Shown one piece after another: positions 7,659 through 12,019 of a stretch of 64,000 nt of DNA. Both the position numbers and the translations under genes were made by a program. Position 1 is the first letter of the stretch. Every line of letters begins with the position of its first letter. A model generated the notes under the pieces. It was given only the letters and a program-made list of their open reading frames with translations. It did no database searches and was not told the origin of the DNA. The stretch spans positions 100,502,001-100,566,000 of the forward strand of contig NC_043000.1 in the NCBI RefSeq assembly GCF_006345805.1, read 5' to 3'. Source of the DNA: Octopus sinensis. Lineage: Eukaryota.

Positions 7659-8370
7659 TCTTTATATATATAAAACTGAGAATGTGTGTCCGTCTGTCTG
7701 TCTGTGTGTTTCCCTAAAACTTGAGAACTACACAACCAATTTCATTCAAATTTTACACATGCCTTACTTAGGGTCCATGTAGTTTCATGGGCAAAAAAAT
7801 GTTCAACTTCTTGCCTAGAGCGAGCCCATAGCAATATCATATCTTCTTCACTATTTCAGTATTACGTGTTAAAAGTAAAACAAAAACATTTCTCTATTTT
7901 ATGTCAGATACTTTCACTTTAACAATAAAAATAATAATAACAATTGAATTAAGTAATAATTAAAATCAAACTAAAGTATAATATAATCGTAACATAACAA
8001 AAGTAAAAATAGCAATTGGTATAAAATTGCATCAATGACTTGAACTTGAATAAGTGGTTTCACATGAATGGGAATAAATTAGAAATAAAATTAGCGTGCA
8101 GAAATGGAATAGTCCAGATGGATAATAAAAAATTAAATTAAAGAAAAGACTATTGTCTATAAAGTATACAATGTAGAGAAAAAAGAAGATTGAACAGTCG
8201 TGTTTTTTGCGCTCTGTAAAATTCGGTTAAAAAGGAAAAAAGAGCAAAAAGTGAATTGTGGTTGTTGTGGAAATTTTGAACGTCGTGGATGCGGTTTCGC
8301 GTTACACTGGTTCTACGCGTTACACTTTTTCGGTTCGGGCGGCCGTTTTCGGCCTGTCAGACAGAGGGAA

Positions 8371-9756
8371 ATGGATGACCACTCCCTAGTGGAGGAGTCG
8401 GAGGAGGAATGGATATTTGAGAACTTGTCGGAGACATCGACCTCTGAAGACGAGCAAATCGGTGATGTAAATAATGTGGAGATAAAAAACAGGAAAACGT
8501 ACGCAGGAGTTGCAAAAAAGAAGACGGCACAGGAAAAGGAAATAAACCTAGAAAAATTGCCAGGTTTCCAGAGGTATATGAGGAAGGACAGCGGTGAGGT
8601 GGAACTGGAACCACCACCAAAGAGAAAGGAATGGTACGATAAAAGGACCATTATTTACAGGGTGTTCGCAAACGAAAGGAAGAAAATAGAAATTGTAAAC
8701 ATGGAGTGGATAGAGGAGGCCCTGAGAAGATCGGAGGAGGAAATTAATTTTCTGACTCGAGGATCGAAGTATGGTACTGTAGTGGTACATTTTAAAAGTG
8801 AGAATGCAGCGAGGAAGATGGCGGCGAAGGCGGTAAAGTCAGAAAAGGTAACACTTTTACCTATGTATTTGAATAGAAGGATTACACGAGTGAGGGTGGA
8901 GGGAGTGCCACCAAACGTTGAGGCAGAGTGGATTGTGGAGGCTGTGATCAGCGGCCACGAGGAGGAAGTGGATATTCTCCATGCCTCGGTTAAGGCCGAG
9001 GGCTGGAGAGGCGTAACAGTGGAGCTGAACGTGCAGGCAGAGAACGAGGTACTGGTGGACCTGGCGGAAAGCATCAGATTGGGAGACGTGATCATGAGAG
9101 TGTGGGTGGAGGGCAGAGCTCCACGTTGTTACAAGTGTGGCCTGAGGGGTCACATAAGAGCCTTCTGCCCTCCCCCACCAAGAGAAAAGGAAATTGTTGC
9201 GGAACCCCCAAGGGAGGAAGAAAATAAAGAAGAGATCCAGACAGAGAAGGAAACGACAGAAGAGGAGATCCAGCAGGAGTGGGAAGAAGAAAGGAAAAAA
9301 AGAAAGAGAAGAAGGAGAAAGGCGAACAACACGGTAAACCAATCCATCCCAACACCACCCACACCCTCTGAGTCCCACCCTATCCCTGCAGACAGTGAAC
9401 CCACCCGCTCCCCTCCAACAAGAAAACAAAAAAGTAATACACACAGACAAGAGACTGAAACCGAATCCGGGCGCTTTGTTCTGTGTAGGTTAAAAAAAGA
9501 AAGAGAGGACATAAAAGACATATTAGAGGGTTATCCAGGGTATGAAAAGGGGGACTGGAAATATGCAATGGTGAAGAGGGAAGAAATGGATGAACTGTTA
9601 GTGTGGTGCGAAAATAGAAATGTGAAGGTGGAGGAGTGGGCAGTTGGGGATAAGATAAAGAATGAGTTTAAAAAAAGATATGCGATGGACTTGGAGAATA
9701 TGTTTATTGAAATGGGGAGAACAATGGATGATAGGGTACGAAGGACAGGTAAGTGA
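8371..9756 (+). CDS. Non-LTR retrotransposon ORF1/gag-like protein, unit 1 (461 aa from the first ATG)
   Basis: Intact ORF (track 8200-9756); RRM-like region, zinc knuckle CYKCGLRGHIRAFC (CX2CX4HX4C), acidic tract, basic KKRKRRRRK; L1/Tx1-type ORF1 layout. Confidence 0.85.
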   Translation: MDDHSLVEESEEEWIFENLSETSTSEDEQIGDVNNVEIKNRKTYAGVAKKKTAQEKEINLEKLPGFQRYMRKDSGEVELEPPPKRKEWYDKRTIIYRVFANERKKIEIVNMEWIEEALRRSEEEINFLTRGSKYGTVVVHFKSENAARKMAAKAVKSEKVTLLPMYLNRRITRVRVEGVPPNVEAEWIVEAVISGHEEEVDILHASVKAEGWRGVTVELNVQAENEVLVDLAESIRLGDVIMRVWVEGRAPRCYKCGLRGHIRAFCPPPPREKEIVAEPPREEENKEEIQTEKETTEEEIQQEWEEERKKRKRRRRKANNTVNQSIPTPPTPSESHPIPADSEPTRSPPTRKQKSNTHRQETETESGRFVLCRLKKEREDIKDILEGYPGYEKGDWKYAMVKREEMDELLVWCENRNVKVEEWAVGDKIKNEFKKRYAMDLENMFIEMGRTMDDRVRRTGK

Positions 9757-9781
9757 TGCTAGCGGATGGGGCCGTTAGCAT
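9756..9781 (+). promoter_or_regulatory. Conserved RNA hairpin overlapping the ORF1 stop (unit 1)
   Basis: ATGCTAGCGG-ATGGGG-CCGTTAGCAT, 10 bp with one G.U; equivalent hairpin at 11368-11399. Confidence 0.6.
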
Positions 9782-9858
9782 TACTTTCATAATATCATTT
9801 TCAATATTCATTTTTCATTCTTTGTAATTGTGATGTTCTATGTCCCCAATGTTTGTAG

Positions 9859-9898
9859 TGTCCCCTCTGTGTAGCCCCTCGTGGGTAATAAAGAAATA
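9859..9898 (+). promoter_or_regulatory. LINE-type 3' tail with stem-loop and AATAAA, shared with SINE family B
   Basis: TGTCCCCTCTGTGTAGCCCCTCGTGGGTAATAAAGAAATA vs the SINE tail at 13481-13522; counterpart at the end of unit 2 (~11481-11523). Confidence 0.75.
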
Positions 9899-10006
9899 TG
9901 TGGTCGTTGCGGAATTGGAACGTCGGTTGGTGCGGTTTCGCGTCGCACTGGTTCTGTGCGTCGCACGTTTTCTGTTCGGGAGGCCGTTTTTCGGTCTGAG
10001 GCGACT

Positions 10007-11371
10007 ATGAGCCGCCTCTACCAAACGGATGAGATGGAAGGGAGAAATTTCTCTAAAAATTCGTCGACATCTGAGGAGGAGTTGGCGGTGAAAAAAATGG
10101 AAAGCACCTACGCAGGTATAACGAAGAAGTCAACAGAAAAAGAGATAGACCTGGCTAAGTTGACGGACTTCCAGGAGTTCATGAAGGAGGAGGAGAACGG
10201 AGAGGTTGAGCTGTTGCCTCTAGCAGGGCGCGGAGACTGGTTCCATCGTAGAACCATTAAATATAAAGTATTTATGAATGGAGGTAGAAAAATGGAAGTG
10301 ATTAACATGGAAGCAATTGAAGAGGCTTTCAAACAGACAGGAGAAGAAATTGTGTACATGACAAAAGGATTAGAATATGGAACCATAACGGTACAATTTA
10401 AAAGTGAGAAAGCAGCCAGGAATATAGCAGCCAAGGTGGTGAGTACAGAAAAGTTTTACTTGTTCCCCTCGTATTTGAATAGAAGGACCACCAGAATTAG
10501 GGTGGAAGGAATACCTCCACACTTAGAGGGCGTATTAATAACGGCTGCGGTTATCAAAGGAAATGAAGATAAAGTGGACATCCTCCACGCCATTATGAAA
10601 TATGAAGGCGTGAGAGGTGCCACACTAGTAATGAACATACAGACGGAGACGGAAGTTATAGAAAAGCTTACGGACAGTATAAAAACTGGAAATATTATTA
10701 TGAGAGTGTGGGTGGAGGGTAGGGCGCCCAGGTGCTACAAGTGTGGCCTGAGGGGTCACATAAGAGCCTACTGCCCTCCCCCACCAAAGGAAAAAGAAAA
10801 GGAAATCGTCGCGGAAGCCCCAAAAGAGGAAGAAACCAGAGAGAACCAAACGGAAAAAGAAACGACAGAAGAAGAGGAGATGCAACAAGAGTGGGAAGAA
10901 GGAAGAAAAAAGAGAAAAAGAAAGAAAAAGAAAAACTGTGCGAAGCCCCAACCCACCCCAACACCACCCGCACCCTCTGAATCCCACCCTTCCCCTGCAG
11001 ACAGTGAACCCACCCGCTCCCCTCCAACAAGAAAACAAAAGAAAAATAATAATACAGACAGACAAGAGTTTGAAAACGAACCCAGGCCGAACATTTATAT
11101 TGTGACTGAACAGAAAGAGGTTGAAAGGGTAATGGAGGAGTATGAATGGTATGAAATGGATGGGACCAGATATGCAGTGCTGGAAAAGAAGAATATAGAT
11201 GAGTTTGTGTTGAGGTGTGAAAGGGAGAATTGGGAGGTGAAAGATACAAGAATGAGCGATGAATTCGTGGAATATATGGAGGACAGTTTCGGAGTAAGAA
11301 TGGCTATGGATGGTCTTCGTATTGGGAATGAACATTCGGGTGACAGTGAAAACAAAAGGACAGGTAAGTGA
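10007..11371 (+). CDS. Non-LTR retrotransposon ORF1/gag-like protein, unit 2 (454 aa from the first ATG)
   Basis: Intact ORF (track 9881-11371) paralogous to unit 1; CYKCGLRGHIRAYC; ends RTGK* like unit 1. Confidence 0.85.
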   Translation: MSRLYQTDEMEGRNFSKNSSTSEEELAVKKMESTYAGITKKSTEKEIDLAKLTDFQEFMKEEENGEVELLPLAGRGDWFHRRTIKYKVFMNGGRKMEVINMEAIEEAFKQTGEEIVYMTKGLEYGTITVQFKSEKAARNIAAKVVSTEKFYLFPSYLNRRTTRIRVEGIPPHLEGVLITAAVIKGNEDKVDILHAIMKYEGVRGATLVMNIQTETEVIEKLTDSIKTGNIIMRVWVEGRAPRCYKCGLRGHIRAYCPPPPKEKEKEIVAEAPKEEETRENQTEKETTEEEEMQQEWEEGRKKRKRKKKKNCAKPQPTPTPPAPSESHPSPADSEPTRSPPTRKQKKNNNTDRQEFENEPRPNIYIVTEQKEVERVMEEYEWYEMDGTRYAVLEKKNIDEFVLRCERENWEVKDTRMSDEFVEYMEDSFGVRMAMDGLRIGNEHSGDSENKRTGK

Positions 11372-11525
11372 TGCTGGCGGAGGGGGCCGTTAGCATCGCT
11401 TTCATATTATCATTTTTTCATTTTATATTCATTTGCTCATAAATTTAATCATATTGTTCTATGTCCCCCATGTTTTGTTATGTCCGCCATTCTTCGTAGC
11501 CCCTGGTGGGTAATAAAGAAATAAC

Positions 11526-11840
11526 ATGGAGGAAAGCACCTTCGAAAAGTGTCTTGGTGCGACTATGAAAGATATCTAATCAGAGGCGGTAAATTCGCCA
11601 CAATAGAAGCAAGGTTCGAGTCAACGGAGCGTGCAAGGGAGTACTCGACTCGAACTTGCAAAGTGGAAATATTTCATTTTTACCTTTATATCTGGGACGT
11701 AGGACGTCCCGGAAAAAAATTTAAAATGCTCCCCCCCCCCCAAAAAAAAAAGTAGAGGTAGGCTGGATTGTAGCCACACTTCTATACAAGAGAGAGGACA
11801 AGGTACAATTGATCGAAATTGCAAGAGACGGGCTTACAAT
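11526..11840 (+). pseudogene. Third, diverged and frameshifted ORF1 fragment
   Basis: YLIRGGKFATIEARFESTERAREYST aligns to FLTRGSKYGTVVVHFKSENAARKMAA; VEVGWIVATLLYKREDKVQLI aligns to VEAEWIVEAVISGHEEEVDIL. Confidence 0.7.
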
Positions 11841-12019
11841 TCCAGCCTGTTATATATTTTGAGTATTGTTATCACTAGCGATATCAAGATATAACTTTGT
11901 ATTTTGCATTTTATGTGTTGATGTATATATATAGATGTACATGTAATATGTACACATATATATACACATATTACATGCACTAGCACTATGACCCGGCAAC
12001 GACGGGTCTTTAATGGTAG

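Follow-up and report, generated by a model that had tools for sequence, protein, structure and literature searches.

A 64,000-nucleotide (nt) stretch of the Octopus sinensis genome (contig NC_043000.1, positions 100,502,001–100,566,000, forward strand; the whole stretch is termed the window) contains an insert at positions 7659–12019 that has the termini of a Helitron, a rolling-circle transposon, and lies inside a short interspersed nuclear element (SINE). Within the insert are two intact genes of a retroelement type. The question raised by this locus is whether the Helitron transported these genes as cargo, or whether it served as a landing site into which they were inserted. Both possibilities had been put forward in a first-pass annotation made from the sequence. 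The data support the assignment of 7659–12019 to a non-autonomous octopus Helitron family, this copy being inserted between A and T in the (TA)n tract of a SINE. The explanation considered probable for the locus as a whole is that the Helitron backbone was dispersed first, and that retro-units having only open reading frame 1 (ORF1) landed in it later.

The split SINE and the structure of the insert

When positions 7659–12019 are taken out, one tRNA-derived SINE (termed family A) is restored, with a colinear alignment through its internal (TA)n. The two halves, 7474–7658 and 12020–12207, match the adjoining halves of intact copies in the window, and the joined flanks also span at least 15 more intact SINE copies in loci of Octopus vulgaris. 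The rejoining of the flanks into a single family A SINE, as first annotated, is thus borne out. The features of the region are (strand in brackets):

7474–7658 (−), tail half of the split SINE-A; matches the tail half of the copies at 33808–33989 and 29647–29833
7659–8178 (+), Helitron 5′ arm, starting with TCTTTATATATATAAAACTGAG; its 3′ limit is approximate (8116–8190)
8179–9898 (+), retro-unit U1w: 5′ untranslated region (UTR), intact ORF1 at 8371–9756 (461 amino acids, aa), 3′ UTR ending GGGTAATAAAGAAATA
9899–11523 (+), retro-unit U2: intact ORF1 at 10007–11371 (454 aa), same 3′ tail as U1w
11524 to ~11850 (+), decayed third unit U3: canonical 5′ start ACATGGAGGAAAGC, internal deletions, no 3′ tail
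11851–12019 (+), Helitron 3′ arm: TA-rich, hairpin at 11990–12008, ends GTAG
12020–12207 (−), head half of the split SINE-A: (TA)n, then a tRNA-like head; matches 33973–34155 and 29479–29669
33808–34155 (+), intact SINE-A copy (family of ~350 bp)
29479–29833 (−), intact SINE-A copy
54183–54504 (−), intact SINE-A copy

The nested arrangement of retro-units in a Helitron and a Helitron in a SINE is therefore as originally described, as is the content of two intact ORF1 genes and a third fragment. At its 3′ limit the 5′ arm merges into the 5′ UTR of the first retro-unit, and the window U2 is 5′-truncated relative to its sister copies. Low-complexity ones aside, no open reading frame of at least 150 aa other than the two ORF1 genes occurs on their strand of the window. 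The SINE head half carries motifs resembling A and B boxes; ARAGORN found no tRNA in the window because the SINE head is too diverged.

Termini of the element and its sister copies

The 5′ junction in the window reads ...atatata/TCTTTATATATATAAAACTGAG (the slash marks the boundary), so that the element is preceded by an A. Its 3′ end consists of the hairpin GACCCG-gcaacga-CGGGTC (11990–12008) followed by TTTAATGGTAG/tatata; the last bases of the insert are GACCCGgcaacgaCGGGTCTTTAATGGTAG, and the next base is a T. The 5′ start at A/TC and the hairpin with GTAG/T, reported in the first-pass annotation, are thus present at the positions given there.

Sister loci were found by matching the C-terminal 95 aa of the second ORF1 to O. 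vulgaris gene models and then fetching the corresponding genomic places (numbered with the letter L). Word-indexed protein searches with the full reading frame, or with its part containing the RNA recognition motifs (RRM) and CCHC motif, gave no matches, and only the 95-aa query worked. In this sample, which is one of cargo-bearing copies, six O. vulgaris loci share both ends in the form A/TCTTTATATATATAAAACTGAG ... GACCCGGCAACGACGGGTCTTTAATGCTAG/T:

L005, 7898–10735, composite of 2.8 kb, both ends
L006, 2864–10759, composite of 7.9 kb, both ends
L007, 4680–10757, composite of 6.1 kb, both ends
L008, 1716–10737, composite of 9.0 kb, both ends
L009, 9792–10768, composite of 1.0 kb, both ends
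L011, 4616–10752, composite of 6.1 kb, both ends

These lie on six different O. vulgaris chromosome records. The recurrence of the 22-nt 5′ end together with the 19-nt hairpin in six other loci means that the two termini are not chance matches; they belong to one family. A further locus, L001, has a 5′ end of the TCTTTATATATATAAAACTGAG type followed by at least 18 kb of units. The outer boundaries are nucleotide-identical in the seven complete copies (window, L005–L009 and L011), with unrelated flanks. An A precedes the 5′ end in L001, L005–L009 and L011, also with flanks that are unrelated in each; with the window included, an A stands at the end of the 5′ flank in 8 of 8 loci, and a T at the start of the 3′ flank in all seven complete copies. 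The window 5′ arm is 92%–97% identical to the arms of L005–L008 and L011.

The features that define Helitrons are a 5′-TC, a CTRR-3′ terminus, a subterminal palindrome, insertion between A and T, and the lack of a target site duplication (TSD) (PMC4778049). The CTRR terminus is held by the family, as CTAG in all six sister copies, but not by the window copy, where a single C to G change has given GTAG. The hairpin GACCCG/CGGGTC is situated 11 nt from the 3′ end and is kept in all copies. Its predicted fold in the window has an energy of −8.7 kcal/mol (z = −3.1 against shuffled sequences). Canonical copies form a longer stem (z = −5.5, calculated for L005), in which the terminal CTAG is paired with an ACTAGCA situated upstream; this longer stem is broken in the window copy by the C to G change in CTAG.

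The first-pass annotation had noted the absence of a TSD. A TSD cannot be assessed in the window copy itself since its target is (TA)n; the absence is seen in sister copies with unique flanks. Three or four of the sister flanks are TA or ATA microsatellites and the rest are unique sequence. There is no duplication at L005 (aataaaa/tattata), L008 (gatatgata/ttgttaata) or L011 (gttcgtta/taggttat). The joined flanks of L011 are colinear with a paralogous repeat in L003, with no gain or loss at the junction. Together with the SINE copies in the window, this gives two paralogous empty sites that agree with insertion without a TSD. Among the fetched O. vulgaris loci none is orthologous to the window locus, and the comparison is therefore with paralogous rather than true empty sites.

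Terminal inverted repeats (TIRs) are absent, as inverted matches between the two ends consist of TA microsatellite only. The composite has no poly(A) and no tail of a long interspersed nuclear element (LINE) at its 3′ end. No transposase gene is found inside the element, which is why it is regarded as non-autonomous.

Several rearranged copies were seen. In L010 (41046–41521) a partial Helitron copy has the last ~38 nt of the arm joined straight to U3; immediately after its CTAG comes a degenerate 5′ end that belongs to this family too, a 3′-to-5′ tandem junction. L010 was considered as an ancestral state without units; the last 9–10 nt before the junction, however, are probably a unit 5′ end, and the copy may instead be a deletion derivative. 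In L008, segments 1691–4498 and 4498–7300 represent a local tandem duplication of 25 nt of host flank, the 5′ arm and the first unit, so that the 5′ end occurs twice with the same flank. L005 has a tandem duplication of the initial ~190 nt of the 5′ arm (7898–8088 and 8089–8280, ~86% alike). The ~190-nt duplication is also found in L008 and is absent from the window copy.

The retro-units, their protein and a related LINE

The units are ~1.6–1.7 kb long and consist of a short 5′ UTR, a single reading frame and a 150-nt 3′ UTR that ends GGGTAATAAAGAA(ATA). Each has one reading frame, and no reverse transcriptase (RT) or endonuclease is encoded in the unit. The two ORF1 products in the window share 49% identity. 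U1w is 73%–77% identical to every other sampled unit, and the window U2 is 99% identical to the U2 of L005–L008. The decayed U3 has an ORF1 remnant at 11656–11796 (detected by tblastx), and its start motif ACATGGAGGAAAGC is common to complete units and to LINEs in L001. U3 is present in L005–L011 and has the same age as the arms.

Pfam searches with the two reading frames gave sub-threshold CCHC matches only. A profile comparison showed that a CX2CX4HX4C motif, which follows the RRMs, matches retroviral nucleocapsid knuckles at ~1e-6. An AlphaFold2 model made from a 24-sequence alignment has a mean confidence score (pLDDT) of 91.7 and displays two RRM-like domains, and the structures that it matches best are those of tandem-RRM proteins. 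(An earlier prediction from two sequences had a pLDDT of 42 and was of no use.) The unit protein is thus predicted to be an RNA-binding protein of the LINE ORF1p type with two RRMs and a CCHC knuckle. The earlier term “gag” is imprecise, since an RNA-binding, ORF1p-type protein is predicted rather than a retroviral capsid.

An exhaustive HMMER search yielded 433 protein relatives of ORF1, and annotated relatives occur only in O. vulgaris, O. sinensis, O. bimaculoides and Argonauta hians. The ratio of non-synonymous to synonymous divergence (dN/dS) between unit families is 0.2–0.35, with a value of 0.32 for U1w against U2 and U1v (a young family described below). Many individual unit copies are frameshifted. 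Solo units flanked by TSDs are present in L003 (17 bp), L010 (18 bp, a 5′-truncated U2) and L012 (17 bp). Unit starts range from 8116- to 8316-equivalent positions of the window and the 3′ tail is constant.

L001 contains at 10263–15444 a 5.2-kb LINE with an ORF1, an APE endonuclease domain (PF03372) and an RT domain (PF00078). The 5′ start of this LINE is of the same kind as that of the units, its ORF1 is 35%–37% identical to the unit ORF1s, and over its last 46 nt it matches the U1w tail at 91% identity. A second abundant SINE, termed SINE-B, has the last ~40 nt of the units as its 3′ end and is found in the window at:

13290–13523, 13524–13784 and 39749–39990 (−), SINE-B copies

From the shared tail, the TSDs of solo units, the ORF1 fold, the selection on ORF1 and the LINE partner, the units are read as non-autonomous, ORF1-only relatives of a LINE.

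The L001 array, of at least 18 kb, opens with a Helitron 5′ end and contains LINEs and ORF1-only units of several families head to tail. The LINEs at 10263–15444 and from 23062 to the end of the locus are full-length (ORF1, APE and RT), with reading frames that are partly broken. A Penelope-like element or a retrozyme tandem array was considered for the arrays and dropped; Rfam gave no match on the whole window and there was no hammerhead support.

Carried by the Helitron or landed in it

The order 5′ arm, U2, U3, 3′ arm is constant in all sampled copies, and so is the U2–U3 junction. The parts differ in age. Among the window copy and L005–L008, the arms and U3 show a pairwise difference of 3.2%–5.8% and the whole U2 one of 0.9%–1.7% (Fisher p from 3e-3 to 2e-11 for U2 against arms plus U3). 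The U2 UTRs differ by 0%–0.4% in 9 of 10 pairs; the exception is L005–L007 with 4.0%, caused by a 13-nt insertion in the L005 5′ UTR. U2 is thus three to five times less diverged than the Helitron arms, and the step falls at the unit boundary.

The U2 5′ junctions also vary: U2 is continuous with the arm in L005, and starts at the 8166-equivalent position in L006 and L007, at 8193 in L008 and at 8257 in the window, i.e. four starts in five copies. Variation at the 5′ end, the 3′ end being fixed, is characteristic of independent events of reverse transcription. The content between arm and U2 differs as well. There is U1w in the window, nothing in L005, and two to several units of a young family, termed U1v (93%–99% alike), in L006–L008; U1w is in no other sampled copy. 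It was considered whether L005 is a one-unit microhomology deletion of a window-like copy, and this was dropped because all O. vulgaris U2 units read the same at that place.

The younger age of U2, its variable 5′ junctions and the variable upstream content suggest that the intact units arrived after dispersal of the Helitron. The intact ORF1 genes are thus more likely to be guests that landed in the Helitron than cargo carried by it. Of the two readings offered in the first-pass annotation, the landing site is the better supported one, and transport of intact genes is not favoured. What has demonstrably moved with the Helitron is U3 only, together with, probably, a unit 5′ UTR fused to the arm.

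A true cross-class transport is rather unlikely. It would mean that the Helitron captured a piece of an array, or was invaded once, and then copied the whole composite with its intact ORF1 genes, later differences being due to unequal recombination and gene conversion. The constant order of U2, U3 and 3′ arm and the common U2–U3 junction are as expected from this, U3 clearly moved with the arms, some junction types are common to L006, L007 and L008, and 3′-end bypass with transduction is an established route of Helitron capture (PMC4778049). However, U2, including its non-coding UTRs, is much less diverged than the arms and U3, with the break at the unit boundary; recombination of homologous units would not yield the differing U2 5′ junctions (arm-continuous, 8166-, 8193- and 8257-equivalent); and U1w is unique to the window.

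Some points weigh against the order of events in which units landed after dispersal. The synonymous divergence (dS) of U2 is 0.026 (~2.6%), closer to the arm divergence than the divergence of the U2 UTRs is, and the five U2 reading frames show 31 non-synonymous against 16 synonymous differences, so that non-synonymous changes are only slightly below the neutral level. U2 could also look younger than it is through gene conversion among its copies. The first unit is seamless with the arm in every copy, and this join requires homology-guided 5′ joining or recombination, which is assumed. Some junctions recur, e.g. a unit start at the 8307-equivalent position in L006, L007 and L008; this could represent co-inheritance through Helitron transposition of a composite that already bore units. 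Recurring starts may be preferred starts or the result of shared descent. Since loci were sampled with a U2 peptide, Helitron copies without U2 are outside the sample, and there is a corresponding bias in the proportion of U2 insertions found within Helitrons. In addition, no RepHel gene turned up in the fetched loci, in which no screen aimed at Rep/helicase was made.

Other explanations

It is very improbable that the insert is not a Helitron, and that a segmental duplication or a retro-copied read-through transcript acquired a TC start and a hairpin near its end by chance: the GTAG end of the window copy in place of CTRR, the (TA)n site that hides a TSD and the lack of a transposase gene would allow it, but nucleotide-identical boundaries in seven loci with unrelated flanks, each with an A before and a T after, are against it, as are the absence of a TSD, a poly(A) and a LINE tail at the 3′ end, the CTAG in six sister copies, the colinear paralogous empty site of L011 and the 3′-to-5′ tandem junction of L010, and solo retro-units in the same genome do show TSDs of 17–18 bp.

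Equally improbable is a cluster of host genes, i.e. domesticated, tandemly duplicated genes for RNA-binding proteins situated between two unrelated repeats. The two intact reading frames, the dN/dS of 0.2–0.35 between families and the use by O. vulgaris gene models of a consensus splice donor at the stop codon agree with such a cluster, but the many frameshifted copies, the occurrence at many loci of solo units with TSDs and 5′ truncation, and the 3′ tail shared with a LINE and a SINE do not, and purifying selection between subfamilies is normal for active retroelement lineages.

Possible mechanism of unit accumulation

The most probable sequence of events, Helitron dispersal followed by landing of the units, would be as follows. 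The backbone (5′ arm, U3 and 3′ arm) would have been dispersed by rolling-circle transposition, the step seen directly in the sister copies. Active ORF1-only units would then, as we infer, have entered individual Helitron copies, in dependence on an autonomous LINE with ORF1, APE and RT that has the same 3′ terminal sequence. The most likely route would be target-primed reverse transcription primed on the 3′ tail of a resident unit. Units would in this way stack with exact tail-to-head junctions and variable 5′ ends, every unit would keep its tail, and the last tail would keep its old neighbour, the U3 start. No TSD is visible at stacked units, which can be understood if the duplicated 17–18 bp of target are the tail itself.

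The U2 in L006 and L007 begins caatgtagagaaaaaaggtcgcg, which is the exact arm–U2 junction of L005, down to a deletion of 11 nt when compared with the window. These U2 copies are therefore taken to be descendants of a U2 situated immediately behind a Helitron arm, with transcription starting inside the arm. As some U2 copies carry arm sequence at their 5′ end, the Helitron may supply a transcription start. Arrays are also found outside Helitrons: in L004 every downstream unit bears a stretch of 33, 50 or 70 nt from the sequence in front of the first unit.

The initial retro-derived segment may have entered the ancestral Helitron either by capture through 3′-end bypass or by insertion. The sister copies in O. 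vulgaris suggest that ORF1-only retroelements land preferentially in this Helitron family and may also be launched from it. A more far-reaching and tentative proposal is a two-way partnership, in which the Helitron family spreads both a docking site (the resident 3′ tail) and a launch pad that bears a promoter (the 5′ arm). The Helitron-borne unit would act as a master copy, and retro-copies would home to the same Helitron and build arrays of intact genes for RNA-binding proteins.

Comparison with known systems

SINEs and LINEs predominate in octopus genomes, whose transposon ecology has received little curation. At the locus described here and in its sister copies three transposon classes interact in a definite sequence: a Helitron inserted into a SINE, and this Helitron family would then have been colonised repeatedly by ORF1-only LINE derivatives. 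This would be a concrete case of a DNA transposon serving as a niche for retroelements, and perhaps as a promoter. Priming on a resident 3′ tail would also explain the origin of heterogeneous head-to-tail LINE/SINE arrays.

Gag-only non-LTR (non-long terminal repeat) elements that are stacked head to tail are known from Drosophila telomeres, where HeT-A is primed at the end of the resident copy. By analogy, the octopus ORF1-only units are stacked head to tail with proposed priming at a resident end. Unlike HeT-A arrays, the octopus arrays are internal, inside a DNA transposon, and nothing suggests a telomeric role.

Capture of host sequence by Helitrons is well known (PMC4778049). The octopus family resembles non-autonomous capture Helitrons, such as HelibatN with the NUBPL promoter and the maize Helitrons with gene fragments, in its 5′ TC, 3′ hairpin and CTAG, insertion between A and T in AT-rich DNA, lack of a TSD and of a transposase gene, and foreign sequence between short arms. 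It differs in that the content is a row of complete coding retroelement units of another class and not a host gene fragment, and that this content turns over between copies by retro-insertion; the window copy differs further in ending GTAG.

The account of Tx1L in PMC6719617 describes a non-LTR element that preferentially inserts in the DNA transposon Tx1D of Xenopus laevis, which leads to composites. In both cases a LINE-type guest is found in copies of a DNA transposon, the octopus preference being drawn from a sample biased by the U2 peptide. The octopus host is a Helitron, whereas Tx1D is a TIR element; the octopus guests have ORF1 only, and their targeting appears to be through the 3′ tail of a resident unit rather than a site in the DNA transposon.

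HAL1 (half-L1) elements are mammalian L1 derivatives that keep ORF1 only and rely on the ORF2 of a partner (PMC5753468). The octopus units similarly share their 3′ end with a LINE that has ORF1, APE and RT, a resemblance that is functional only. Their ORF1 is predicted to be of the two-RRM and CCHC type, in contrast to the coiled coil, RRM and C-terminal domain of L1 ORF1. They have no poly(A), end in a specific tail that is also on a SINE, and form arrays.

In a limited literature search there was no report of a Helitron family with an array of coding ORF1-only retro-units that turns over, and no description of these elements in cephalopods.

Additional observations

Every A-type unit ends ...RTGK followed by the stop, with the stop codon spanned by a consensus 5′ splice site, CAG/GTAAGTGA (window positions 9749–9757 and 11364–11372). 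The O. vulgaris gene models P0155 and P0159–P0163 start inside U2 and use this stop-codon donor, which is spliced to unrelated downstream exons or to the next unit. This is of consequence for annotation, as gene models begin in units and are spliced to unrelated downstream sequence.

Four other models (P0022, P0067, P0105 and P0121) are host-like proteins with an ORF1-derived segment at one end; the host-like parts are CFAP65-like Ig domains, LDL-receptor class A (LDLa) repeats, C2H2 zinc fingers and WD40. These ORF1 segments point to exonised units or chimeric gene models. It was considered whether the long protein matches are fusions with a LINE ORF2; this was rejected, the matches being chimeric gene models (CFAP65-like, WD40, LDLa and C2H2).

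SINE-B is often multimeric, as at 13290–13784 and 39335–39560 (−) in the window and at 85292–86144 in L006, with up to five modules in a row. In the multimers the tail is followed directly by SINE-B from position ~65 (GGTATTTCGTCTG...). The sequence GGTATTT is common to the end of the SINE-B tail and to position 65, which suggests template switching or tail priming.

It should also be mentioned that a run of N (an assembly gap) at ~33100–33200 of the window adjoins TA-rich repeats and appears as X in the translation of an open reading frame.

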